This document shows, one piece after another, positions 11,433-61,884 of a stretch of 64,000 nt of DNA. A model generated the notes under the pieces. The model was not told the DNA's origin. It worked only from the letters and a program-made list of their open reading frames with translations, and did no database searches. Positions within the stretch are counted from its first letter, which is position 1, and each line of letters opens with the position of its first letter. Where the stretch lies: sequence record NC_049850.1. One strand, 5' to 3'. A program made the position numbers and the translations under genes.

Positions 11433-11766
11433 CATTCGCACCGTCGGCACGGACCTGCGTGTCCTTATCAACTCGTTCTCGTGTCACGTATCGAAGACGC
11501 AGCGGGCCACGATAAATATCAGTGGACAGGTTGAAAGAATTGGGGTATCATGCCACTTCACTTTTCAACTCGGCCCCAAGAAGACGCGTCTGACGTTCAA
11601 GGACGCGTGGATCAGGGACCAGTCTCATCCGCAAGAAGTGGCGTTTGCCGTTAAGTGCGCGCTGGCCGACTTCATTCGCAAGACTGATGTGGTGCCCGAC
11701 GCTTATCGGGAACAGCTAGTTCAATTGGTGCTTCGGCATCACCTACAAGACAAGGAGCAACGATGA
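11425..11766 (+). CDS. hypothetical protein
   Basis: 113-aa ORF overlapping its neighbours. Confidence 0.55.
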   Translation: MSNIRTVGTDLRVLINSFSCHVSKTQRATINISGQVERIGVSCHFTFQLGPKKTRLTFKDAWIRDQSHPQEVAFAVKCALADFIRKTDVVPDAYREQLVQLVLRHHLQDKEQR

Positions 11767-12227
11767 TCGAATACACCAACCGCGAAGACTTCGATGACGG
11801 GCTGGACAGCGAACTTCTCGTCAAGTTCGACTCGCTGTTGGGCGAGACCATCGTCGGCGTCGAAGACGACCCGCAGCGACGCTACATCATCTTCACGACG
11901 ATGAGCGGACGTATGCTCAAGCTGTACCACATGGACAGTTGTTGCGAGGATGTGTACATCGAATCGATCACTGGTGACCTGTTCGATCTGTTGGGCACCC
12001 CGCTTCTGCTGGCCAACGAGTCGACGAGCGACGAGAACCCGAAGGCGCAGCCGCGACCAGACTACCTCGATGAAGAGGACTACTGGGATGGGACGCCGGA
12101 ACATTTCCAGTGGACGTTCTATCGACTGGCTACCGCACGCGGTTTCGTCGACATCCGATTCTACGGTTCGAGCAACGGGCACTACTCGGTGAAGGTACGG
12201 CTCGCAGACATTACGGACAACCAATGA
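11763..12227 (+). CDS. conserved phage protein of unknown function
   Basis: YHxxxCCEDVYIESITGDL...WTFYRLAT..G.V.IRFYGSSNGHYS resembles a widespread phage family. Confidence 0.65.
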   Translation: MIEYTNREDFDDGLDSELLVKFDSLLGETIVGVEDDPQRRYIIFTTMSGRMLKLYHMDSCCEDVYIESITGDLFDLLGTPLLLANESTSDENPKAQPRPDYLDEEDYWDGTPEHFQWTFYRLATARGFVDIRFYGSSNGHYSVKVRLADITDNQ

Positions 12228-48564: not shown

Positions 48565-50571
48565 TTATCGCGTGCCGTTGAGCGTGATCGATACGCCGCT
48601 AAAAGTCGTGTCCGTGACGCCCGCAGCGAACGTCATCACGTCGCCTGCTGCAAACGTGACCGGGTTCGATATGTTCACGGTGCCAGTCGACGAGCCCGCA
48701 GGATACGTGATGTCCCCCACCATTACACCGTTCTTGTAGATGCCTATGATCACGATGCCGGTCGTAGCCACCATCGAACTCGACAAGTTTCCGGTGATGC
48801 CGGAGAGTCCAGCAGCGAACGCCACGCTACGCGCGAATATCGTTCGGTAGAACGTAGCACCAGCTACCGGAGTTCCCGGGTAGAACGTCATGATGTCGTA
48901 CGGCTGCGGCGGTATGGTTGCTGTGGGCGGCGCTGTCCATGTGCCGTCTTCACGCAGATACCTAGTGGTGCCAGCCGTCGAACCCGGGCTCGGAACAAGA
49001 CCGTTTTTGGCGTTGACGCCGGACGGCCCGAACGTCGGAACGTTCATCTGGATCGACACGTTGTCGTTGCCATCGGCCCCGACTATGATGTTGCTGTCGT
49101 ATGCCACGATCTTGCGGAAACGAGTCTTGCCCGAGCCGTCGTTTGCGGCCGACATAACCGACGTGCCTGACGGTGCCGTGTTGTCGTAGGGTACAAGGTT
49201 CACGTTGCCGTTGCCGTCTGGCGACGCCCCGTTGACGGTCTTGACAGTTCCCGACGCCGTGATGTTGACCGTACCGTCTGCCGCCATCGACATGCCGGTC
49301 CCTAGCTTGATGCCGCCTAGGACCGTACTCGATGCTTGTGGCAGCGTGTACGGGGCCGGTATAGTAGGCAGTCCTAGCAAGTCTGAGTAGTTGCCAGTCT
49401 TAGCCACGGTGGCCAGATTCTGAACGTCGCTGGCTCGAATGGTCAACACATAGTTGCCTGTGTTGTCTGGGGCCGTCCCATTGATGCTAAGCACACCCAA
49501 GTTTGTGATCGTACTGTTCGTATAGTCGATCCCACGGCCTGCCGTGATGCCTTGACCCAAGTTCGAGCGTATATCGTCGAGCACCGCCTGAAGGTTCTTG
49601 CCGTAAGTAGTGCCAACGAGTGCTGCGCCACCTGCGCTACCCAGATCGGATTCAGCCACCACGTCAGCGATCCGGAGTGCGTTGATCTCGACCGTGACGA
49701 GCGGCGCTCCGGCCACGACCATGGCCGCGACTTCGGGGGCGAGCACGATCTGAACGCCGCCCGTGCCGTCATAGGCCAGTCGTTCGAGATATGCACCCAT
49801 CAAATAAACGTCAACGACGTTCGGGGTAAAGCCGCCGGGTATCACGAACGTGCCCTGACCATCGGCGGTCGCGTACACGATCTTGATGGTGCGTCGGTTC
49901 AGGTCCCCACTCACTATCAGGTTATCGTTAGGATCACGATCGATTGTGATGTTGGCACCCGCTACCAGTGTTCGGAACTTCATGCGCGCGTCATGCGCGC
50001 CAGAGTCCGAGATCAACGAGTTGCCGGTTCCGGGGTGTGCATCGACAGCCTCGATGGTGAGACTGCCGTCCCCCATTGGGTACATGTCGTTGATACGAAG
50101 GACGCCTGTGTTATTGACCCTGATGGTGCTGCCCGTGTTGTCGATGCCGATGCCGGGGCCGCCCTCGATCACCACCTCGCCTGTCTTGTTGTTGACACTG
50201 GTGACAATACCCTTGATGGGCATTGGATCAGTAGTCGAGTGCACGACGAACGTGATCTGCACTACTGCGGTGTCAGTGTCCGAGCGGTTGGTGATGAAGA
50301 ACTGATCTACCGGATCGTCAATGGACAGTTGCTGATCGACCGCTACTGCTGTTGGGGTTCCGGTCCCTACCACAGTCGACACAAACACAGGCTTGTCCGT
50401 GCTGATCGTGAGCGCCGAGAACCCAACATCCGCATCCCATTGCTGCCCCGGCTTCAGGACAATAGTCTGGTTGATGGTCTGATTGGCGTAGTACTTTGCC
50501 ACCAGATTCTCGTTGATGACTGGAACACCGGAGCCGCGAGTGCCTGTCTTGATTACGAAGCTGTCGCCCAT
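48565..50571 (-). CDS. 668-aa accessory fibre protein
   Basis: VTSVN..TG, LATVAKTGNYSDL and TLPQAS..LGGIK fibre repeats; C-terminal PYDI tip domain. Confidence 0.7.
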   Translation of the reverse strand: MGDSFVIKTGTRGSGVPVINENLVAKYYANQTINQTIVLKPGQQWDADVGFSALTISTDKPVFVSTVVGTGTPTAVAVDQQLSIDDPVDQFFITNRSDTDTAVVQITFVVHSTTDPMPIKGIVTSVNNKTGEVVIEGGPGIGIDNTGSTIRVNNTGVLRINDMYPMGDGSLTIEAVDAHPGTGNSLISDSGAHDARMKFRTLVAGANITIDRDPNDNLIVSGDLNRRTIKIVYATADGQGTFVIPGGFTPNVVDVYLMGAYLERLAYDGTGGVQIVLAPEVAAMVVAGAPLVTVEINALRIADVVAESDLGSAGGAALVGTTYGKNLQAVLDDIRSNLGQGITAGRGIDYTNSTITNLGVLSINGTAPDNTGNYVLTIRASDVQNLATVAKTGNYSDLLGLPTIPAPYTLPQASSTVLGGIKLGTGMSMAADGTVNITASGTVKTVNGASPDGNGNVNLVPYDNTAPSGTSVMSAANDGSGKTRFRKIVAYDSNIIVGADGNDNVSIQMNVPTFGPSGVNAKNGLVPSPGSTAGTTRYLREDGTWTAPPTATIPPQPYDIMTFYPGTPVAGATFYRTIFARSVAFAAGLSGITGNLSSSMVATTGIVIIGIYKNGVMVGDITYPAGSSTGTVNISNPVTFAAGDVMTFAAGVTDTTFSGVSITLNGTR

Positions 50572-50729: not shown

Positions 50730-51848
50730 CTACGCGGTTGGCAATTCTGCGTTTACGGTCATGCCAAAACTACAGGTTCCGAAGCCTCCTAGTAGTTGGT
50801 TACCGGCAGGCAAGTTCAGGCGCACTGCGTTGTTCGTCTGTGAGGCCACGGTCGGATTGCCTGAGCTAAGGTTGGATACAGACACACCGCTGAACGCAAG
50901 CGTCGGGTTGCTGATACGCTTGTACTCGTACTGCGCCGTCATCTGCGGAACCTGTCCGTTGCCTACCTGTCCGGACCACGCGAAAGGTGTTCCAGAGAAC
51001 GCTTCGTAGTAGAACAGACAGTCGTTGAGCATGGACGCTAGGTCGCGAAACTCGTAGCCCGTAAATTGCGGCCCGAACTCAAGCTGAACTTCAGACAGCA
51101 GCGCCGTGAACGTGCCGGGAGACGCAGCAGTAGCAATCTGCAATCTCAGGTAGTGGTTGGTCCCCAGAGTTTTGCCCACAACCGAGGGCAGCGCAAACGT
51201 CTGCTGACACCGCGTCCACGTGTTGGCGGCCACCGCTATAGCCGAGCCCGCAAGCGCCACCGTCGACGAGCCGCCACTCCCGAAGTTCTGGAATAGCGAA
51301 GGCGTAAACGACATGGCCTTAGTCGTGTTCACGTAGAACGACACGGTTACGTTCTGGCCCGCTAGTGTTGACACGTCATTTATGGACTGCGAAACATACG
51401 GAGTGCCGGTGCCAGATGTTTCTTGCCACGACAGATAGCTGATCTCGTTATTCGAGGTTCCTGTGGCCATGCTGACCGTAGCCCCGTTGCTGAACATGTA
51501 CCAACGATCAGCCACAAACCCGGCAATGGCACCGGACGCCGGATTGCCGTACTGGTTGAGCCGGAAGCGCCCGTTGATGACACGGTTCTTTATAGAGCCA
51601 AGCGCGAAGTTGCCTGTGCTATCTGGACTCACCCCGTTGATCGTTTTCACCAACTGGTTGGTCGTATTGGTCGACGTATAGGCGGTGGCCGTGACCGCAG
51701 CACTTGCCAGCAACCGAACTGCGCCAGACGAATCCAGCGTATAGAGGTTGGCGTCGGCGGTGTTGATGGCCAGTTGCCCGGCCACCAAGTTGTCGACAGC
51801 GGGCGGCAAACCCGCTGTCGAGTTACGAAGGTGTTTTACGACGGTCAT
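50730..51848 (-). CDS. distal fibre subunit: gp37-like N-domain plus carbohydrate-binding jelly-roll tip
   Basis: GQLAINTAD; NRVINGRF...ADRW...VQLE.G. Confidence 0.7.
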   Translation of the reverse strand: MTVVKHLRNSTAGLPPAVDNLVAGQLAINTADANLYTLDSSGAVRLLASAAVTATAYTSTNTTNQLVKTINGVSPDSTGNFALGSIKNRVINGRFRLNQYGNPASGAIAGFVADRWYMFSNGATVSMATGTSNNEISYLSWQETSGTGTPYVSQSINDVSTLAGQNVTVSFYVNTTKAMSFTPSLFQNFGSGGSSTVALAGSAIAVAANTWTRCQQTFALPSVVGKTLGTNHYLRLQIATAASPGTFTALLSEVQLEFGPQFTGYEFRDLASMLNDCLFYYEAFSGTPFAWSGQVGNGQVPQMTAQYEYKRISNPTLAFSGVSVSNLSSGNPTVASQTNNAVRLNLPAGNQLLGGFGTCSFGMTVNAELPTA

Positions 51849-51861
51849 CAGTACACCTCAA

Positions 51862-52977
51862 TTAAGTCCCGGAGTAGGTGCCCTCGTCGAGCGTCAGGAC
51901 CGAAGTGTTGACCGAAAACACACCGCCCGCAACGGAAAGGCCCGAGCCCGCCTGTGCCAGACCGAGCGCCGCTGCCGATCCTACCGGCAGATTCGCTGTG
52001 GGCACTGTGGTTACCCACGTTGGCACATTGGACGCGTTGGTGGTCAGCACCGAGTTAGCTGCGGCACCCGCACCTTCCTGCGCGGCGCTGAGCGTCGATA
52101 CCCATGTCGGGGCACCGCTACCGTTCGTGGTCAACACATCGCCGTTACCAGCACCCGAGCCGAGTTGCGCAGCCGCAAAGGTTCCGGTCGTGATGTCTGC
52201 GGCACCAAGAACAACGGTGCCCGTCTTGCCGTTGACCGACGAGACCAGCGCGGAACTCTCGACGGTTCCCCACACGGTGCCGTTCGAGATAAGCCAGTCG
52301 CCCGTGCTGAACGTGAGTGCCGGTTGGCCTGTGCCCGGAGGCGAGTACGTGCCTGCCGCAGTTGCTATGTAGTACCAACCTTGGTTGCCCGAGGCCGCAG
52401 CCGGTAGCGTACTCGTGCCCGGTACGAAAGTCCCTTGGTACTGCACGGCACCCACAATAGAAGCCGGTAGATAGGACACGGGAATCTTGCTGCCCGAATC
52501 CAGAGGTGCCACACCGTTTGCGGCACCAACGCTAGAGGTAGCGACACCGCCAAGCGTAGTGAGCGCGGCCGAGGCCGAGGCCGCCGTCAGCAGCGCGGAG
52601 CCCGTTGCCGTAGCCCCGATTGCGGTCTGCACTGCTGCGGTTGTTGCGGCCGTGAACACGCCGATACCGACTGACGTACCACCCAGCGTGTTGAGGGCCG
52701 CGCTCTGGTTGGCGGCCGTGAACAAGGCGTTACCGACCGTCGTGGCTCCCAAGTTCGTGGGAGTCAATGCCACGTTCCCCGACGACGGCGATACTCCGTT
52801 GACCGAAGTAACCGTCCCGTTCGCGCCGGAATAGAATGTGGCAATCGAGTTGTCTGCGCCAAGAATGAAGATTTTCTTGTCGGCTGCGTTGATTGCGATT
52901 TGGCCGACCACCAGTTCTGTGGTGCTCGGTACTAGACCTGCGGTGCTGTTATGCAGATGTATTAGCTTTGCTGCCAT
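51862..52977 (-). CDS. middle fibre subunit: gp37-like N-domain, Ala/Gly/Thr shaft, C-terminal LDEGTY
   Basis: GQIAINAADKK; VTSVNG; YQGTF..GQGWYY. Confidence 0.7.
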   Translation of the reverse strand: MAAKLIHLHNSTAGLVPSTTELVVGQIAINAADKKIFILGADNSIATFYSGANGTVTSVNGVSPSSGNVALTPTNLGATTVGNALFTAANQSAALNTLGGTSVGIGVFTAATTAAVQTAIGATATGSALLTAASASAALTTLGGVATSSVGAANGVAPLDSGSKIPVSYLPASIVGAVQYQGTFVPGTSTLPAAASGNQGWYYIATAAGTYSPPGTGQPALTFSTGDWLISNGTVWGTVESSALVSSVNGKTGTVVLGAADITTGTFAAAQLGSGAGNGDVLTTNGSGAPTWVSTLSAAQEGAGAAANSVLTTNASNVPTWVTTVPTANLPVGSAAALGLAQAGSGLSVAGGVFSVNTSVLTLDEGTYSGT

Positions 52978-52988
52978 TTTTGGTTCTC

Positions 52989-53543
52989 TCAGTGCCCTAC
53001 GAATGCACCCTCATTGAGGGAAGATTGGATATCCTGCCAAGCGGCATTACTTCGTACGTATACCTTACTGTCTACAGGCGCGTCTCCTATTCCGCTGATA
53101 GCGGATGTTGGTGTTATTGGGGACACGCGACTGACCAAATACATGTCCCCGTTGGTAGCAGGTTGGTTCAGAGAGATTCCAGCAGCAGTAGACGAGAACG
53201 CAGTTGTCTTGTAGCCGTTCTTGTACACAGAGAGCAGTGCAGCACCACTGTTCCCTATGGGAATGAGGTTGTCGCCGGGATTGGCAACATACAAGAAGGC
53301 GTCAGATAGCGCGAATAGCTGCTGGCATATTAGTTGGTAGTCCAGAATAAACTGCCATCTGGACTTGGTGTCCGACCACTGGTAGGCCCCGGGGCTAAAG
53401 ACGCCGACGCTTTGGGTCAGTATCAGATTGAGGCCCCTCGTATCTGGGTACGCGGGCAGCGTGTCAACCAGTGGGGCAAACGCATTTGTGATGCCACCAT
53501 TGGATCGGACTATCGAATACGGGAAAAACAGAGCGACTGACAT
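52989..53543 (-). CDS. short fibre anchor protein with foldon-like motif
   Basis: N-domain paralogous to ORF 61884; GIGDAPVDSKVYVRSNAAW; ends LNEGAF. Confidence 0.6.
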   Translation of the reverse strand: MSVALFFPYSIVRSNGGITNAFAPLVDTLPAYPDTRGLNLILTQSVGVFSPGAYQWSDTKSRWQFILDYQLICQQLFALSDAFLYVANPGDNLIPIGNSGAALLSVYKNGYKTTAFSSTAAGISLNQPATNGDMYLVSRVSPITPTSAISGIGDAPVDSKVYVRSNAAWQDIQSSLNEGAFVGH

Positions 53544-53614
53544 GATTGTTTTTAGTTCTAAGTTTGCACTTCAGTGGTGGTCTCCACGTGTACTACTGGG
53601 GCCCCCGCCCCGAT

Positions 53615-54100
53615 TTACTGCGCTGTTGCTACAAGCCGTGCAGCGGCCCCCAGCCCACTGTCAAGCGCCGGTTGATCCTGCGGAATCTCGGTACTGTTCG
53701 TGAACAGGGACCAGTTTGCATCGGCCGCTGTCTCGGTCTTGTTTGCGTCTTTGTTCTGTTCTTCAGGCGTCTTGCCGTCACGCACACCATACGCGTCGTC
53801 GAGCGCTTTCTTGGCATCGTAGAGCCGCGATTTATCCGCGCCTTGCAGATTGCGGCCCTTGCGATTGATGAACCCATTCAACTTCGAACTGGCTTCGCCT
53901 CGATCTTCTGAGTGCTGCTTGAGTTGGCGCGCGATCTCGCTGGGGCTCTCGGTGAACGTGCCCTTCGGCAATTCTGATCCTGCGCGTCGGCCCTTGCCTC
54001 GGTACTGCTGGTCCATGCGCTGCTGCCACGTCTTGTCCTGATCCTGCTTAGGCGGGTCCGTGATTTGGCGCTCAGCCAGCAGCCTATAGGCTGCTTTCAT
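53615..54100 (-). CDS. second DUF3175-like protein
   Basis: LPKGTFTESPSEIA...LNGFINRKGRNL...L.DAK; GGAGAAGG RBS before ATG 54100. Confidence 0.6.
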   Translation of the reverse strand: MKAAYRLLAERQITDPPKQDQDKTWQQRMDQQYRGKGRRAGSELPKGTFTESPSEIARQLKQHSEDRGEASSKLNGFINRKGRNLQGADKSRLYDAKKALDDAYGVRDGKTPEEQNKDANKTETAADANWSLFTNSTEIPQDQPALDSGLGAAARLVATAQ

Positions 54101-54124
54101 AACCTTCTCCATGTTCTCTGGCTG

Positions 54125-54157
54125 CAATAAAATTGGGACGCCTCAGCGTCCCAATTT
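54125..54157 (-). terminator. intrinsic terminator overlapping class B motif (54127-54136)
   Basis: 12-bp perfect stem AAATTGGGACGC / GCGTCCCAATTT right after the stop of ORF 54446. Confidence 0.7.
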
Positions 54158-54158
54158 G

Positions 54159-54446
54159 TTAAGTCGCCGATGTATCGCTTGGCGGTACAGGCAATAGCTG
54201 TAGTATGTAGGCCGTGTACGGCCGCACAATTGTCGTGTTGCCTATGTGCTCGGTCTCGTAGTACGTACGCTCATCGTAGTGCAGTTCACGACTCGTACCA
54301 AGTGCCGCTGGATCGAGTATCAGGACCCCATAGTTGAACTCGATTAGGTAGTCGTCCGGAACACTTGCGAGTACGTCAGGCCACTCTGTTTCGTCCCACG
54401 TCGCTACGTAGAACGTTTTGCTTATATCATCCTTGTAGGTGTCCAT
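54159..54446 (-). CDS. hypothetical protein
   Basis: 95-aa acidic ORF with AAGGA RBS. Confidence 0.55.
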   Translation of the reverse strand: MDTYKDDISKTFYVATWDETEWPDVLASVPDDYLIEFNYGVLILDPAALGTSRELHYDERTYYETEHIGNTTIVRPYTAYILQLLPVPPSDTSAT

Positions 54447-54455
54447 ATGTTCCTT

Positions 54456-54821
54456 TTAACTCGGTGTGAACCAAGTAATAGTGGTCATTGGTTTAGCTGG
54501 GTCCAAGGTTGTCTGCGCTATGACCTCCAGCGTAACACCACTGTCTTGTGTGGTATACGGAAGGCCCGCTATGACTTCCATGGATACACCATAATCGTTT
54601 GCCGGAATTAGGCCGGACGCCAACACCTCCATTTGAACCGCATAGTCATTCGCATTGAGCGGGGGTATGATCAGGACTTGTCGTGCTACAGCCTGACTCT
54701 TAACCGCCGATGACTGCGACAGTAGAACCTGCCGCGCTACTGCCCTAGCAGTAGACGCGGGAGATTGAACCGTGAGTAGCTGTCTGGCTAGGGCTTGGGC
54801 CTTTACTGGGTTACCTGCCAT
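54456..54821 (-). CDS. 121-aa protein of six tandem beta repeats
   Basis: AQALARQLL / AVARQVLL / AVARQVLI, then NDYAVQMEVLA / NDYGVSMEVIA / QDSGVTLEVIA. Confidence 0.6.
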   Translation of the reverse strand: MAGNPVKAQALARQLLTVQSPASTARAVARQVLLSQSSAVKSQAVARQVLIIPPLNANDYAVQMEVLASGLIPANDYGVSMEVIAGLPYTTQDSGVTLEVIAQTTLDPAKPMTTITWFTPS

Positions 54822-54835
54822 GGGCTACTCCGTGA

Positions 54836-57088
54836 TTACGTTATGTGGTTCAAAGCAAACTGCGAGGCTTTGATCGAGTTGGTGGTCCACGCCTTGTTGC
54901 CGTTCGGATCGATATCAGACAGAACCGACACGTATGTAGGAGTCGTACCTGACACCGTGACTTGCGAACTGTCCGTTTCAGCACCGCTACTCCGCAACCC
55001 GACGCTAACAACCGGGGCCGTGGTCGAGGTTTTGGTGAAATACGTCTCCACCAACTGTGCCCGAGCCGTATAGCCTGCCGGAATCGTGTCTGCCGAAGAG
55101 TACACGTCAACGTCTCCGGAGTTCGAGGACGCTACGTTCTTCGAACTCAGGCTCGATAGTGCAGCCTGATTCACTGCGCTGGCGTTAGTGCCCGAGCCAC
55201 CGGTCGGGACCCATTGGGCCTGAACATCGGCATTGGGACGCTGAACCGCGATGTTGATTTGACCGAGGTTACCGCTAAGGCCGGTGCCGTCTTCGAGCGT
55301 CACGTAGATATCGTCGATTGCGGTAAAGCACCCCGAACGTTGGAAGCCGATCAGGAACAGGCCCGTCGTGTCGATGTTGCGTGTGAACTGATAGGTGAAC
55401 TTCGAGCCGATCTGCACACCGTCAATGTACATGTACACATCGAACTGGTTGACTGACGCGCTGTTCTTGACATACCGCATTTCGAAGTAGTGATACAGGT
55501 TCGACGTTGCAGACAGCGATCCTGTCAGATACGTTGTGCTGTTTCCTACCGAATCCAGAATACCCCACTGACGATTGCCACCAGAGGCCCCCGCCACGAA
55601 TAGGTGCAAGAATCCACCGTACGTGTTGAAGACCGTAAACTGGCCGTTCGCGGCGGGCGCTCCGGATGCAGATACCACCAGACCGCTGCCAACACCACCT
55701 GTCAATCCAGTTGCTGTGGCGTCGAGCGCCTCGTATACGTTCAGCGCCTGCCAATTGGTCACCATGTCTGGGGTGGTGGCGATAATACCGGTAACGGAGC
55801 TTGAGAACAGTACGTATTTGCTACCGTCATACAGATAATTTGTATAGCCGCCGGTCGCGACGTTCGTGAGTGGAGTGCCCACCAGAGTCCATGTAACACC
55901 ATCTAGTGTGCTGTATACCGACCCACCGTTTGTCACCGCATAGAGCGTGCTGCCGACCAGTATAAGCTGGGTCGGCAGTACTGGCAAACTCAGACCCAGC
56001 GTCATCGTCACTGTTCCGGACAGCGGACTAGGCGTTCCGGGAGTGCCGCCCGGATTGGCCGCGTACATAAGGCCCATGTTCGTGGCAAACACATAGCGAT
56101 TCGCAGCGGGCAAGAACGCCATATCCGTAATGTAGTTACCACTTGGACCCGGTGCCGTCCAACCCGTGGCGGTCACCGTGAAGCTGGTCCACGCGCCCGA
56201 TGTGTTCAGCGCTGAGTTTGCGGCAACTGCCATCAGCCCGTAACCGGAGTAGAAAAGAGCAACAACACCACTGCTACCGCCCAACAAACGACTTACGGTA
56301 GAAACCGCGTTAATGGCTTGAGTTGCACCGCCCCCGCTCGACGCTAGGGTAAAGTTGCCAGCGCCCTTCTTGGCGTCCCCCACCATTGCATACATGATGC
56401 CCTGAAATCCTGAACTGGTATTGGATATCACTGGAACAACATGAGGAAACGCCGAGTTGCCGGTGTCCACTGGACACATTGGGCTGGAAACCGACGCACT
56501 CGGAGTGACTGGTAGTGCTACGTTAGTCCAAGACGAACCGTTATTCGTTGAGTAGTTTATAGCCGTCGTATTAGTGCTTGTGTTGGAGACAACCAGCGGC
56601 ACGCTAGACGTTTGGGAGTACGTCATAGCTAGGGCACCAGATATCTGTGCTGGCGTGTCCGTCCAGTTGATCAGGTCTGGCGACGTGCTGATGTTCGTGC
56701 CTGTTGCCCGACGGAACCCCCAGTAACGGGTTCCGTCAAAACCGCACCCTTGGCCCAGTGCTGCGCTAACGTAATACCCAGCGTTGCTGTTGAGTTTGGC
56801 ACCAAAACCGAGTGTGATACCGCCCGCGTTCCAAGCCTGTTGAACTGTGTAGCCCGTATTGTAGTATCCCCACGTCTGGTCAGCAGCAGCGCCCCACAGA
56901 GCCGACGATGCAGCAGACGACTGAAACGCACCCACGGGACGCAGTGACGTTCCCGGGACGTTAGTAACGCTAGGCGCAAACGTCACCTTCTTGGTTGTGG
57001 GAGCCTGTGGGGAAACGCTCCAGTTTTGCAGCCGCAGGTCGCTGTCGTCGCGGGTCGTTTCAAAACCCTGCATGTATTTGAGACTCAT
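54836..57088 (-). CDS. LamG-like lectin with inserted Asp-box beta-propeller
   Basis: N-terminal MQGFE; YHYFEM...YIDG..IDDIYV; Asp-box-like STNNGSSW and STLDGVTW. Confidence 0.55.
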   Translation of the reverse strand: MSLKYMQGFETTRDDSDLRLQNWSVSPQAPTTKKVTFAPSVTNVPGTSLRPVGAFQSSAASSALWGAAADQTWGYYNTGYTVQQAWNAGGITLGFGAKLNSNAGYYVSAALGQGCGFDGTRYWGFRRATGTNISTSPDLINWTDTPAQISGALAMTYSQTSSVPLVVSNTSTNTTAINYSTNNGSSWTNVALPVTPSASVSSPMCPVDTGNSAFPHVVPVISNTSSGFQGIMYAMVGDAKKGAGNFTLASSGGGATQAINAVSTVSRLLGGSSGVVALFYSGYGLMAVAANSALNTSGAWTSFTVTATGWTAPGPSGNYITDMAFLPAANRYVFATNMGLMYAANPGGTPGTPSPLSGTVTMTLGLSLPVLPTQLILVGSTLYAVTNGGSVYSTLDGVTWTLVGTPLTNVATGGYTNYLYDGSKYVLFSSSVTGIIATTPDMVTNWQALNVYEALDATATGLTGGVGSGLVVSASGAPAANGQFTVFNTYGGFLHLFVAGASGGNRQWGILDSVGNSTTYLTGSLSATSNLYHYFEMRYVKNSASVNQFDVYMYIDGVQIGSKFTYQFTRNIDTTGLFLIGFQRSGCFTAIDDIYVTLEDGTGLSGNLGQINIAVQRPNADVQAQWVPTGGSGTNASAVNQAALSSLSSKNVASSNSGDVDVYSSADTIPAGYTARAQLVETYFTKTSTTAPVVSVGLRSSGAETDSSQVTVSGTTPTYVSVLSDIDPNGNKAWTTNSIKASQFALNHIT

Positions 57089-57097
57089 ACGTATTCC

Positions 57098-58240
57098 TTA
57101 ACGAGAAGTCTGGCCGAACTCTCCGGCATTCAGACTGGCTGTTGTCCAAGGGTTCGTGCCGTCTGTTTCCGCCACCGATAGATAGCGCGACGGGCCGTTC
57201 GATGTTGTCATTTGCGTCACACCGGACGAGCTTGATGTTTTGAAAGACCCCTGAATGTTCTGATACCGATTCGAGTTGCCACGCATCACGACCGCACGCA
57301 CATCGGATACCGCTGGCACGTTCCACTTGTAAGTGTCCGTCTGACCGGTAGCCGTTGCCGTGACGTAGTTAGCACCCGTGGTATCAGTTGCCGACTGCCA
57401 GTTGGGCTCTGCACCAGATGGAGTCCACTGGGTGACCGATCCGTTGCCAGTTGCCGAGACCGCGTAAATACGGCGTGCCGTGATAGCGGGTTCCGTTTCC
57501 GGGGTCGGCCACACACCAGCACCGAGAGGCCACGCGGCGTCCGCACCCGAAACGTTCTGAACCACGAGGTCATCAACGAAGTAGCTGATGAAGTTCGAGG
57601 CGAAGAACTTGAGGCGGTTCGCGATCTGCCCTGCCGTGAAGTTGTCTGCACTCCACGTCACCGGAATATCCTGCTGCAACGTCGTGCCGTTGATAGTGTA
57701 CGTGGCAGTCAGGACAGCCGACGATGCAGTCGATGTCGTGCTGTAGTACGAGAACTGAAGCTGTACCCAGTAGTACGTGTTCAACTGGATGTTGAAGTTG
57801 TACGGAGAACTGGTCGGGCTGTTGATGTTGGTTACGAACTGGAGGTTCGTGCCGCCCGACGACGAATTGCTGATGTTAAGGAGCGGATACCACGAGCCCG
57901 GAACGCCTGCGGTGCCGAGCGCGAGCAGCGTGCCCGAGCCCGGGTTCATGGTGCCCACGTTCAGCCAGAAGTTGAACGCGAACGCGGCCTTACCGCTGGT
58001 GGCAGTGTTCCCGCGAATCATCTGCATGGTCGACGGGAACTGGTACTCAAAGCCCGAGGTCAGGGACGCCGGAGCGCCCGACACCGGGAACGTAAGCGCC
58101 GCACCGCCAAATGCACCAGCCGACAAGTTCACCTGTCCGGCTATCGAGCTATTCGTCACGAACCATGGGTAGTTTGCGGCAAGCGTGCCCGAAGGGTAGA
58201 TGTCAAACCCCTCGGCCGCTGCAATAAATTGTGCTGCCAT
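57098..58240 (-). CDS. ConA/laminin-G-like lectin protein
   Basis: N-terminal AEGFD; YYWVQ...FVDDLVV; C-terminal GNGSVTQWTP..PNW domain paralogous to ORF 48555. Confidence 0.6.
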   Translation of the reverse strand: MAAQFIAAAEGFDIYPSGTLAANYPWFVTNSSIAGQVNLSAGAFGGAALTFPVSGAPASLTSGFEYQFPSTMQMIRGNTATSGKAAFAFNFWLNVGTMNPGSGTLLALGTAGVPGSWYPLLNISNSSSGGTNLQFVTNINSPTSSPYNFNIQLNTYYWVQLQFSYYSTTSTASSAVLTATYTINGTTLQQDIPVTWSADNFTAGQIANRLKFFASNFISYFVDDLVVQNVSGADAAWPLGAGVWPTPETEPAITARRIYAVSATGNGSVTQWTPSGAEPNWQSATDTTGANYVTATATGQTDTYKWNVPAVSDVRAVVMRGNSNRYQNIQGSFKTSSSSGVTQMTTSNGPSRYLSVAETDGTNPWTTASLNAGEFGQTSR

Positions 58241-58250
58241 TTGTTACTCC

Positions 58251-59546
58251 TTATTGCCACGTGCCACGGATGGTGATGGTGATGAGCGAAACGTTCGTCG
58301 TCGCAAACTGATAGGACAACTGATCGCCTGCCGCGTAATTGGTTGTGCTACCCGTGCTCGTAAACGAGTTGCCGTTTACCGTGTCGATGTTGAGCGTGCC
58401 GACCTGCGTACCCGTATTCGGAGTGGCCGCCGGGTACTTCATGATGCGTATGGTTGCGGTCGTGCCACTGAGTAGCCGCACGTTTGCCACCGAATTCGCC
58501 CAGTTCTGCGGGAACTGGCACGGGTCCGTGAACATGTAGAACACTTCGTTCACGATGTTCGGGTTGCCCTGAACGTTGACGGGCAGACGCGCGATGCTCG
58601 GGTTGGGCGGTTGGTTCAGCAGGTCCGTGTAGGAGCCAGTGAGCGCCACCGTCGACAGCGTACCCGACGCGAGGTTACCTGCGGTCGCTGCGGTGTTCGT
58701 GAACTGCACGCCACCCAGCGTCGCGGTCGTTGCCTTGGGCAGCGAATACGGCGTAGGCTTGTTCGACAGGTCGTTGTAGTTGCCGGACGTGGCGACGGTC
58801 GCAAAGCCCGCGATGTCGGTAGCCGTCAGCGTGACCGTGCCAGTCTTACCGTTCACGGACGTGACGTTGGAGCCCGAGTTAGCGATCTTCGTCCACACGT
58901 TGTTCGACACCAGCGCCAAGTCACCGACAGCCCACGTGCTGATGCCGTCGATTGACGTAGAGCCCGCAACCGATACCACGTAGTACGAACCGTTTGCCTG
59001 CGCAGTGCCACCAGCAACACCACCGTTCGCGAGAACCGGGTTGTTCGCGTTAGCGTCCCAGTTCCCCTTATACGATAGGCCGCCCGTGATAGACGAGGGC
59101 AGGTATTTCGATGCGACAGTACCAGACGGGCCCGAAAGCAAGTCGGTAGGCAGACCAACGTCTGCGGCCGTAAGCGTCACGGTGCCCGAGCGCGAGTTGA
59201 CGGATACGACACCTGCGTTGGTAATGTTGCCGTTCGAGTCCACAGCCAGACCGCCGCTGGCCGGAACCATCACACCCCCGAGCACCGCTGCCGACGCTTT
59301 CGGGAGTACGTAATTGCCAGCCGACGGTTTGTTGGTCAGGTCGTTGTAGTTGCCGGTGAACGCCACCGTAGACAGATCACCCGGACCCAGACCGATCTCC
59401 TGAATAGCACCCGTGTTGTCGAGTGTGTACAGTTTTCGGTCTGGGAAGTTGATGGCCAACTGGCCGGTGAGTATCTGCGCCGTGGTGGGGCGAGCACCAG
59501 CGGTCAGCAGCCGTGGGTGCTGAACCGGGATGTTAAGAGCAGTCAT
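58251..59546 (-). CDS. fibre subunit: gp37-like N-domain, shaft repeats, tip domain
   Basis: AGARPT...GQLAINFPDRKLYT; TGNYNDL repeats; tip paralogous to the C-terminus of ORF 50571. Confidence 0.7.
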   Translation of the reverse strand: MTALNIPVQHPRLLTAGARPTTAQILTGQLAINFPDRKLYTLDNTGAIQEIGLGPGDLSTVAFTGNYNDLTNKPSAGNYVLPKASAAVLGGVMVPASGGLAVDSNGNITNAGVVSVNSRSGTVTLTAADVGLPTDLLSGPSGTVASKYLPSSITGGLSYKGNWDANANNPVLANGGVAGGTAQANGSYYVVSVAGSTSIDGISTWAVGDLALVSNNVWTKIANSGSNVTSVNGKTGTVTLTATDIAGFATVATSGNYNDLSNKPTPYSLPKATTATLGGVQFTNTAATAGNLASGTLSTVALTGSYTDLLNQPPNPSIARLPVNVQGNPNIVNEVFYMFTDPCQFPQNWANSVANVRLLSGTTATIRIMKYPAATPNTGTQVGTLNIDTVNGNSFTSTGSTTNYAAGDQLSYQFATTNVSLITITIRGTWQ

Positions 59547-59559
59547 TGTGTATTCCTAA

Positions 59560-61884
59560 TTAGCCGATGACGCCGCCATCGATAGTCAAGTTCTGCAAGA
59601 ACGAAAGCGGAACTGCCGCGTCGCCTGTTGTCGGTGTGGTCAGCCCGTTCAGGACTTGACTACCCATGCTTAGCGGGCCCGTCATGGTCACGTTACCTGA
59701 AACAGGCACAGCGTTCACGTTTGCCGCCGTAAGCGAGACGTTGCCGCTACCGTTCGGGCTGATGCCGTTGACCGTCGACACGGTGCCTGCTGGAATCGCA
59801 GCGGTAACCGTGACCAACCCGTTAGCTTCGGAGAGCGTAACGTTTTGGCCTGCAACCAGCGACTTGATGATCGCGGAGTTTGCAGGCGGGCTGGATTCGA
59901 CGAGCAGTACAGCGCCTGTACCGGCTTGACCCGTGACCGACGTTATCGCGTTGGCGATGGATGGGACAACGGACCATCCCAAGTTCTGGCGCATGTAGCC
60001 GTTACCATCGTTCGGGGCCTCCGGAACGCCAGTCCCCGAAATCTGAATCGAGTTGCCTGTGTTCGACAGCGAAATCGCGGGGCCAGCCGTGAACGTGATA
60101 GCGCCAGTCAGCGCGCCAGACGTTCCTGCTGTGATGGACGAAACGCCGCCCGAAGCAGTCGACGCGATGGAAAGGTTCCCGTTCGCGTCAGGAGTGATAG
60201 TCACGCCAGAACCCGCAACCAGCGTCTTCAACTTGATGTTGCCGGTCGTCGAGCCGCTGTCGGAAATCAGCGAAGTGCCGGTTGCCCCGTTGTTGTTCGT
60301 GGCCTGCACAACGACCACACCGGTTTGTCCGGACACCGAAGCAACAGCACCGGTTGCCGAGATCGTGCCGTCGGCCGCGATGCTGATACCAGAGCCCGCC
60401 TTGACACCGCCTAGGTTCACACCGGTCGGTGCCGCAAGCGACAGGTTACCGGTTCCGTCCACAGTCAGACCGGCCTTGACGATAACACCACCGATGGTGC
60501 TGGTCGTAGCCGGGTTCAGCACTTGGTTCGCAGCAATCGTCAGCGTCTTGTTGTCGCCAGACGGCGTGATCGTGACGTTGGAGCCTGCGGCCAGCGACTT
60601 GATCGTCGCGATACCGCCCGCAGTCCCGTTGTTGTCCACCAGACCCGTGCCCGTGCCTTCGTTGTTCACTGCCGTCAGTGCGCCCGAGGTTGCTGTCGAA
60701 CTGATGGTGATGTTGCCGTTAGCGTCCGTGCCAAGCTGAATCAGGTTACCAGCAACCAGCGTCTTCAGTTTTGCGTTGCCGGTAGTCGACCCGTTATTGC
60801 TGATGAGCGACGTGCCTGTTGCAGCGTTGTTGTCCGTGGTCTGAATGACCACGACTCCGGTCTGGCCAGATACGGACTGGACATTACCCTGCGCATTGAT
60901 TTGCAGGTTGCCGTTCGGATCGGAGGCCAGCGTAACGTTGGAGCCAGCGACCAGCGTCTTCAACTTGATGTTGCCGGTCGTCGCCCCACTATCCGTAATC
61001 AGCGACGTGCCGGTTGACCCGTTGTTATTCGTAGCCTGAATGACAACGGCACCAGTTTGTGCGGACACCGAAGAAACCGGAGCCGGAACTGGTGCCGGGA
61101 CTGAGATCGTGCCGTCAGCCGTCACGTTGATGTTGGCACCGATCTTGACTGCGCCAAGAACTGTGCTCGATGCCACGGCCGACACGATCTTGCCGTCGGC
61201 ACTCAACTGAATGCCCTGATCTTGCGGGACATACACACCGCCTAGATGGGCCGCGTCCTGCCCCGCTGCCGGAAGAACGTACTGGTTTGCGCCCGTCAGG
61301 ACGAGGTTGCCTGATCCGTCTGGCGCGATGGTGATGCCAGAGCCCGCGACAAGCATCGCTAGACTCAAATTACCGGTTGTGGACCCATCGTTCTTGATGA
61401 GCGACACGCCGTTGGGAGCATTGTTGTCGACAAGCTTCACTACGACGTTGCCCTGCGGGTCCGGCGTCTGGTTGTTGACCGACCGAACGTCACCGGCAGT
61501 GTAGTTGGCCGTCGTCGTAGCCCCGTACACGGACCCATCGTTTGCGATGAACGTGGGGCCGCCCGGGTACTCGACACCGTTACGCCACACCTTCGAGCGC
61601 GTCGGGAGGCCCGAGTTGGGGTCCGTTACTTCGTAGAACAGATCGATTGCAGCACCGTCGATGATGCCTTGGCAGATCGCGGTGTACGGAAGGGCAAAGC
61701 GCCACCGGCTCTGGCCGATGTCATAGATGTACGCGCCCTTGTCACGACCCGGGCCCTCCGTGGACGCAAGGATAACCGCCTCGGCCGTAGGGTCGATCGG
61801 CAGCGTGTCCACAGTAGGTGCCACCACCGTGTTCGCCACCCCGTTTCGGTGTAGCGTCAGGGAGTAGTAAAAAGTGCTGTCCAT
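59560..61884 (-). CDS. long proximal fibre/anchor protein with internal repeats and foldon-like motif
   Basis: Repeated GTSLI.D.G.TTGNIKLKTLVAG; GVPEAPNDGNGYMRQNLGW; ends TIDGGVIG. Confidence 0.7.
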   Translation of the reverse strand: MDSTFYYSLTLHRNGVANTVVAPTVDTLPIDPTAEAVILASTEGPGRDKGAYIYDIGQSRWRFALPYTAICQGIIDGAAIDLFYEVTDPNSGLPTRSKVWRNGVEYPGGPTFIANDGSVYGATTTANYTAGDVRSVNNQTPDPQGNVVVKLVDNNAPNGVSLIKNDGSTTGNLSLAMLVAGSGITIAPDGSGNLVLTGANQYVLPAAGQDAAHLGGVYVPQDQGIQLSADGKIVSAVASSTVLGAVKIGANINVTADGTISVPAPVPAPVSSVSAQTGAVVIQATNNNGSTGTSLITDSGATTGNIKLKTLVAGSNVTLASDPNGNLQINAQGNVQSVSGQTGVVVIQTTDNNAATGTSLISNNGSTTGNAKLKTLVAGNLIQLGTDANGNITISSTATSGALTAVNNEGTGTGLVDNNGTAGGIATIKSLAAGSNVTITPSGDNKTLTIAANQVLNPATTSTIGGVIVKAGLTVDGTGNLSLAAPTGVNLGGVKAGSGISIAADGTISATGAVASVSGQTGVVVVQATNNNGATGTSLISDSGSTTGNIKLKTLVAGSGVTITPDANGNLSIASTASGGVSSITAGTSGALTGAITFTAGPAISLSNTGNSIQISGTGVPEAPNDGNGYMRQNLGWSVVPSIANAITSVTGQAGTGAVLLVESSPPANSAIIKSLVAGQNVTLSEANGLVTVTAAIPAGTVSTVNGISPNGSGNVSLTAANVNAVPVSGNVTMTGPLSMGSQVLNGLTTPTTGDAAVPLSFLQNLTIDGGVIG

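Follow-up and report, generated by a model that had tools for sequence, protein, structure and literature searches.

In the genome of the Burkholderia jumbo phage BcepSaruman (genus Sarumanvirus; MK552140.1, 263.7 kb), two genes annotated as hypothetical encode proteins, gp281 and gp274, that begin with a related N-terminal domain (N-domain) and carry a short sequence resembling the foldon of phage T4 fibritin. The T4 foldon is a trimerisation nucleus, and the locus raises the question of whether these proteins are trimeric bases of fibres, where on the virion they dock and what they hold. The original prediction, made from a 64,000-nucleotide stretch (NC_049850.1; hereafter the window, record bases 124001-188000), took them for long and short trimeric bases docking to one type of virion site (collar, capsid or sheath). 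The window is 100% identical to BcepSaruman and, from query base 595 on, 96.4% identical to the sister phage BcepSauron.

We conclude that this jumbo myovirus probably carries two separate receptor-binding fibres, with gp281 and gp274 as the subunits nearest the virion. In this model a two-lobed anchor domain of ~140 amino acids (aa) at the start of each protein would dock the fibre on the tail or baseplate, and a homologue of the T4 fibritin foldon would nucleate and register a homotrimer; this module lies directly after the anchor domain in gp274 and, in gp281, after a repeat shaft and ~150 aa before the C-terminus. Each anchor trimer would then present three C-terminal tails ('plugs') to the T4 gp37-like N-terminus ('socket') of the next gene's product, such that separate products join head to tail into fibres, gp281 to gp280 in one case and gp274 to gp273 to gp272 in the other. 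The parts of the two anchors are as follows.

59560..61884, minus strand: gp281 (BcepSaruman_281), putative long fibre anchor, 774 aa (775 codons including the stop), with N-domain, six ~60-aa shaft repeats, foldon-like motif, ~130-aa C-terminal part and plug tail in that order
61435..61884, minus strand: gp281 N-terminal anchor domain, long-type, aa 1 to ~150
59953..60033, minus strand: gp281 foldon-like module, aa 618-644, internal
59563..59586, minus strand: gp281 C-terminal plug tail, ..IDGGVIG, kept in orthologues
52989..53543, minus strand: gp274 (BcepSaruman_274), putative short fibre anchor, 184 aa, composed of N-domain, foldon-like motif and plug tail and no other parts
53103..53543, minus strand: gp274 N-terminal anchor domain, short-type, aa 1-147, two beta-rich lobes in the predicted model
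53019..53096, minus strand: gp274 foldon-like module, aa 150-175, with a predicted beta-hairpin
52992..53018, minus strand: gp274 C-terminal plug tail, ..LNEGAFVGH

The shared N-terminal domain

We found that the N-termini of gp281 and gp274 align with 38% identity over 90 aa (BLASTP, E 6e-12), and to judge from their sequences the two proteins are true paralogues through this domain. The common N-domain that had been predicted is thus significant, but it is larger than the ~75 aa assigned to it: with relatives added, the alignment runs on through a V-(Y/W)-(R/K)-N-G block to about residue 140 (about 135-150). In a six-frame search, BcepSaruman has exactly two copies of the domain and BcepSauron a single one. 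Six metagenomic homologues of gp274 are of the same size and ~50% identical to it. A profile of nine N-domains, searched against 1.84 billion cluster representatives, matched 161 proteins at E <= 1e-3 (66 at E <= 1e-10); these range from 96 to 2287 aa in length, and in nearly all of them the domain stands at residue 1. The domain matches no Pfam family, the T7 gp17-type fibre N-terminal domain (PF03906) included, and scores Z 3.7 against 7boz; phrog_9625, of unknown function, is the only PHROG that covers it. On these comparisons we treat the N-domain as an undescribed anchor domain.

In a phylogenetic tree the N-domains of long type and short type split with 100/100 support, at ~27% identity between types, and their duplication therefore predates the divergence of these phages. 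Both types co-occur in BcepSaruman and in the contigs that we label L013 and L021. Being two old, well-separated clades, they could bind different partners.

An AlphaFold2 (AF2) model of gp274, calculated from a 77-sequence alignment, has a mean predicted local distance difference test score (pLDDT) of 91.7 and a predicted template modelling score of 0.77, and consists of beta-rich lobes at aa 6-75 and 80-140 followed by a C-terminal hairpin. A first model from seven sequences (pLDDT 55) was discarded, and with it a best VIA-align Z of 6.8. Searches of solved structures with the retained model yielded no clear relative (Foldseek best E 0.045, VIA-align best Z 5.5), and the N-domain is therefore assigned to no solved fold; its profile found only chance matches among PDB sequences. 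The weak structural matches are to small beta-sandwiches, namely the N-termini of tailspikes and fibres (CBA120 TSP4, T7-like gp17) and neck proteins. Among predicted viral structures (BFVD), and beyond Saruman's own protein and its Sauron orthologue gp282, clear relatives are a 911-aa protein of Achromobacter phage Motura (E 8.7e-8) and a 611-aa protein (E 3.7e-7), with tailspike and tail-fibre N-termini among the weaker matches.

The CBA120 matches raise the alternative that the short anchor branches off another fibre, docking on gp281 or on another receptor-binding protein, as in CBA120 or phiKp24. The N-terminal branching domains of CBA120 TSP4 are among the best matches of the second lobe (Z 5.2, root-mean-square deviation 1.8 Å over 62 aa), the two N-domain types occur together in the three genomes named above, and BcepSaruman and BcepSauron differ by no extra baseplate gene. 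These Z scores nevertheless fall within the noise range, nothing direct supports a contact between the anchors, and homologous N-domain types are more simply explained by equivalent docking sites. We therefore regard branching as unlikely, and retain two separately docked fibres as the preferred reading.

Two further observations concern the N-domain. The family's most conserved residues, G52, Y54 and W63 of gp274, sit in a hairpin that is foldon-like in some members (..YVRDNGGW..) and has an equivalent in gp281. This stretch (aa 52-67, window 53343-53390) was considered as a second foldon-like hairpin, since hhalign picks it out, and was rejected at a probability of 2.8%. In addition, a 97-aa open frame of the Ralstonia phage phiRSL1 (NC_010811.2, 86897-87058) aligns with the N-domain profile over positions 20-75 (E 2.3e-6); it could be a remnant, or a fragment that stands alone.

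Foldon-like modules

The foldon-like motifs lie at 59974-60030 in gp281 (aa 619-637) and at 53037-53093 in gp274 (aa 151-169). Their presence in both reading frames had been predicted correctly, with lower coordinates that fell about 10 bases below the true ones in each case. When the window is translated in six frames, a regular expression for the motif matches twice; 200 codon-block shuffles give no match. Both motifs are conserved in relatives, several of which are nearer to T4 than are the Saruman copies.

Profile comparison with the foldon family bears out the proposed likeness. We found that a gp274-family profile aligns to the last 80 residues of T4 wac, as given in the T4 record, with 94.8% probability (hhalign, E 5.5e-8, 30 columns). 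Against all PDB sequences it matched 566 distinct sequences, the best 60 of which are all fibritins (1ox3, E 8.6e-4; 1avy, E 1.8e-3) or trimeric constructs (spike, HA, F and others) aligned at the position of the C-terminal tag; the foldon is widely used as such an engineering tag. Pfam Fibritin_C (PF07921) matches six of the seven gp274-family members (best E 1.8e-4). The gp281 family, with a profile built on three sequences only, is more weakly related to T4 wac (57.6% probability, E 1e-4). Nearly all of its 49 PDB matches bear a foldon; the best is 1v1h (E 4e-4), and fibritin alone scores E 0.08-0.2.

The resemblance extends to individual residues. In the T4 foldon, chains are linked by a salt bridge between acidic residue 5 and R15, and the core consists of A6, P7, Y13 and W20. 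All key residues are kept in gp281 (acidic 5, A6, P7, D9, G10, Y13, R15, W20 and hydrophobic 23); gp274 has D5, S10 and I23, and is otherwise identical at these positions, with the same spacing. Across the N-domain family, 27 distinct segments keep positions 5, 6, 7, 13, 15 and 20, all of which the search pattern required. Positions that it left free also follow T4, with I/V at position 3 in 27/27, D/N at position 9 in 26/27, G at position 10 in 19/27 and L/I/V at position 23 in 25/27. The AF2 monomer model predicts strands at aa 162-165 and 168-171 of gp274 (local pLDDT 84-87), where the T4 hairpin aligns.

Within the N-domain family, the foldon is found in three settings. It forms part of proteins of ~160-190 aa that consist of anchor, foldon and tail, such as gp274; it follows the anchor directly (~aa 150-175) in long proteins that continue with 600-900 aa of fibre (P0013, P0015 and P0021); and in gp281-type proteins it always lies ~150 aa before the C-terminus. 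None of the Saruman modules ends a coiled-coil neck whisker: that of gp274 follows a globular domain and that of gp281 is internal, and there is no helical shaft. When one foldon segment was compared by tblastn with 50,697 phage records, 972 records matched at E <= 1, mostly T4-type fibritins; among the rest are a minor tail protein of a Stenotrophomonas phage, a tail fibre of BcepNazgul and a protein of BcepF1. It follows that the module has been shuffled widely and is not peculiar to BcepSaruman.

Such shuffling leaves room for a different local role, in which the stretch is a conserved hairpin at a fibre joint and not an autonomous trimerisation nucleus. The sub-threshold scores of the Saruman proteins themselves, the internal position of the motif and turn residues that read N-L/A-G/A where T4 has D-G are compatible with this, as is the report that some T4-type fibritins fold only with more than a foldon-like motif (PMC3797505). 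Against it, the T4 interface residues are kept at identical spacing in the 27 segments (given the six positions fixed by the pattern), and gp274 has nothing else able to trimerise the chain. We consider a mere joint hairpin improbable, and infer that the module acts as the trimer nucleus.

Internal foldon motifs have a precedent in JS98-type fibritins, which carry a second one (PMC3797505). Just ahead of the gp281 foldon, aa ~592-617 (window 60034-60110) align with the adenovirus fibre shaft repeat of the chimera 1v1h, and the natural order of shaft repeat and foldon mirrors that engineered shaft-foldon chimera. A looser third foldon-like stretch (..RYLREDGTW..) is found in gp271 (668 aa), at aa ~525-545 (window ~48950-49000); this protein has neither the N-domain nor a gp37-like N-terminus.

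Proposed fibre chains, natural fusions and a natural deletion

The remaining subunits of the proposed fibres, and the segment that distinguishes BcepSauron, are the following.

58251..59546, minus strand: gp280, 431 aa, putative subunit after gp281 in the long-anchored fibre
59379-59525, minus strand: gp280 T4 gp37-like N-terminus, aa 8-56, read as a socket
51862..52977, minus strand: gp273, 371 aa, putative middle subunit of the short-anchored fibre, with an N-terminal gp37-like socket and a C-terminal plug, ..LDEGTYSGT
50730..51848, minus strand: gp272, 372 aa, putative last subunit of the short-anchored fibre; N-terminal socket, tail-fibre tip (phrog_4492), plug absent
51215..53591, strand not applicable: segment absent from BcepSauron, bracketed by a 9-bp direct repeat, TCCACGTGT

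The tails of gp281, gp274 and gp273 are related, of the form (L/I)(D/N)(E/G)G-x-(F/Y/I), and the gene directly downstream of each (gp280, gp273 and gp272, respectively) starts with a T4 gp37-like N-terminus. Residues 8-56 of gp280 match aa 7-55 of T4 gp37 (E 2.5e-8), the N-terminus of gp272 matches at E 3e-5, and those of gp273 and gp272 match each other (E 4e-9); phrog_1699 matches are also recorded for the partner proteins. The BcepSaruman genome has exactly three gp37-like N-termini and three plug tails, and the terminal subunits gp280 and gp272 have no plug. The same pattern of genes is conserved in contigs L006, L009, L010 and L013, and a plug-type tail ends 19 of 149 N-domain proteins, most of them short. 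This arrangement leads us to infer a physical contact between plug and socket.

Natural fusions confirm the order and partnership of the subunits, and show that each anchor starts one multi-gene fibre. In P0015 (865 aa), a stretch matching gp274 aa 1-174 (39% identity, E 9e-41) runs straight on into one matching gp273 aa 118-357 (48%, E 8e-63), and what this protein lacks is exactly the plug and the socket. The 1586-aa ORF182 of phiRSL1, annotated 'tail fiber protein', likewise spans a gp281-like shaft and a gp280-like tip, and no gp37-like socket motif was found anywhere in the phiRSL1 genome. The daisy-chained fibres of the original prediction are thus supported both by these fusions of anchor and partner and by the gene pattern in the four related contigs.

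P0015 lies between sheath and tube genes in L021, a distant myovirus contig of at least 142 kb, and beside it (L021 5923-10598) is a second N-domain paralogue bearing a pectate-lyase-like (Pel9A-like) beta-helix. From this pair it follows that long-type and short-type anchors on receptor-binding proteins are an old arrangement, in a tail context. Both L021 paralogues end in a similar ..IRARRI tail. In L013, the distal subunit after the gp273 homologue (11716-12189) is only 157 aa long and has the same gp37-like N-terminus with a different tip, the last residues of which resemble the C-terminus of P0013; on sequence alone, this looks like exchange of a tip cassette.

BcepSauron provides a natural knockout of the short-anchored fibre. 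We found a 2,368-bp deletion between two copies of TCCACGTGT (51215-51223 and 53583-53591), one of which is kept; the repeats bracket 2,359 bp, so the loss amounts to these 2,359 bp plus one 9-bp repeat copy. The deletion removes aa 1-223 of gp272 and the whole of gp273 and gp274. As BcepSauron is an isolated, propagating phage without it, the short-anchored fibre is dispensable on the host of BcepSauron, and since a viable sister phage has lost it, it is an accessory set. Sauron gp275 (149 aa, GTG start) was considered as a divergent anchor or independent gene, and rejected because it is 100% identical to the C-terminal 149 aa of gp272. The deletion point maps to 12001-12009 of L002.

Docking site and comparison with known systems

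All the fibre genes concerned are on the minus strand, downstream of holin, antiholin and GH19 endolysin genes, and converge on a plus-strand baseplate wedge cluster, which they adjoin. The gp281 orthologues of L010 and L013 (900 aa and 675 aa) have the same neighbours, holin, antiholin, endolysin and anchor, and one contig, L013, has both anchors arranged as in Saruman. Within gp281, six copies of the ~60-aa repeat are marked by L-(V/A)-A-G at aa 178, 311, 376, 431, 555 and 676, the sixth copy lying after the foldon-like motif. On the basis of the gene context, together with partners of the T4 long-tail-fibre gp37 type, we favour the baseplate or tail as the docking site, and consider the collar, capsid or sheath less likely.

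Several results weigh against the proposed fibre bases. gp274 itself has no Fibritin_C match, and the only such match in the six-frame translation of the genome, the gp281 motif (E 0.022), scores 12.7 bits, under the curated cut-off of 21 bits; the gp281-family profile is small, as stated above. Many members of the N-domain family have no foldon, among them phiRSL1 ORF182, which indicates that the foldon is not essential to the anchor, and gp273 has a plug and no foldon. The N-domain has no clear relative of solved structure, and a literature search found no virion proteomics or expression data for these fibre genes, nor any description of fibres for BcepSaruman, BcepSauron or phiRSL1 ORF182.

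Another possibility is that gp281 and gp274 are neck or collar whiskers or head fibres like T4 fibritin, with an N-domain that docks on proteins of the neck or capsid. Fibritin, a neck whisker, is the best-known bearer of the foldon, neck proteins of P74-26, DT57C and phage 812 are among the weak fold matches of the second lobe (Z 3.8-5.5), and related long anchors show a faint Phage_head_fibr match; but the partners bear N-termini like that of the T4 long-tail-fibre protein gp37, gp272 matches tail-fibre tips, the genes adjoin the baseplate cluster and in L021 lie between sheath and tube genes, there is no coiled coil, and the fold matches are within the noise range, all of which makes a whisker or head fibre unlikely.

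Read as the bases of tail fibres, the two anchors are a real and tidy case of modularity in phage fibres, and a fairly ordinary one. Both the foldon and fibres of several modular subunits were known before; what is new is an uncatalogued family of anchor domains, a relative of the foldon that is internal or N-proximal in tail fibres, and the Saruman/Sauron pair. Roles can now be proposed for seven 'hypothetical' or vaguely named genes of a phage of the Burkholderia cepacia complex, and a widespread N-terminal fibre-anchor domain is defined (at least 161 clusters, no Pfam model, no solved structure). The foldon, moreover, occurs naturally in tail fibres in both positions. Because the short-anchored fibre is present in BcepSaruman and absent from BcepSauron, this natural pair of phages allows its docking site and its contribution to host range to be tested directly. 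More speculatively, and with considerable doubt on our part, the short protein, comprising anchor, foldon and plug, might be a free-standing universal adaptor that adds receptor-binding fibres to existing docking sites. Foldon polarity would then be opposite to that of T4, with the trimer nucleated at the N-proximal end of the fibre, and anchors of both lengths would use the same sites, jointly or in competition; if true, virions would carry mixed sets of fibres.

Among known systems, the CBA120 TSP4 branching domains and the T7 gp17 N-terminus resemble the N-domain in being small N-terminal beta-sandwiches of receptor-binding proteins, and give weak structural matches; however, these involve only the second lobe, do not exceed Z 5.5 or improve on a Foldseek E of 0.045, and are unaccompanied by sequence similarity. 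ORF182 of phiRSL1 (phrog_9625) has the same N-domain (E 1.1e-10; 2.2e-18), the same position after holin and endolysin, shaft repeats like those of gp281 and a C-terminal tip like that of gp280. It differs in being a single polypeptide with no foldon, and as the phiRSL1 genome has no gp37-like socket, the joint is absent as well.

The foldon of T4 fibritin (wac, PF07921) and the Saruman modules share a length of ~27 residues, the same spacing and key residues (acidic-A-P, D-G, Y-x-R, W), similarity at profile level and, in gp274, a predicted beta-hairpin. They differ in setting: the T4 foldon ends a coiled-coil whisker, whereas the modules of gp274, P0013, P0015 and P0021 follow a globular N-terminal anchor, that of gp281 is internal after a beta-rich repeat shaft, and the Saruman sequences score below the Pfam cut-off. 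With respect to the T4 long tail fibre (gp34-gp35-gp36-gp37), the Saruman anchors are without similarity to gp34, gp35 or gp36, the plug tail motif differs and the N-domain family is unrelated to the baseplate-binding ends of T4. Yet the fibres are alike in consisting of successive gene products, gp280, gp273 and gp272 share the N-terminal motif of gp37, and gp274, with its 184 aa, is a short connector ahead of the distal subunits, comparable to gp36 (221 aa) at the gp36/gp37 joint.

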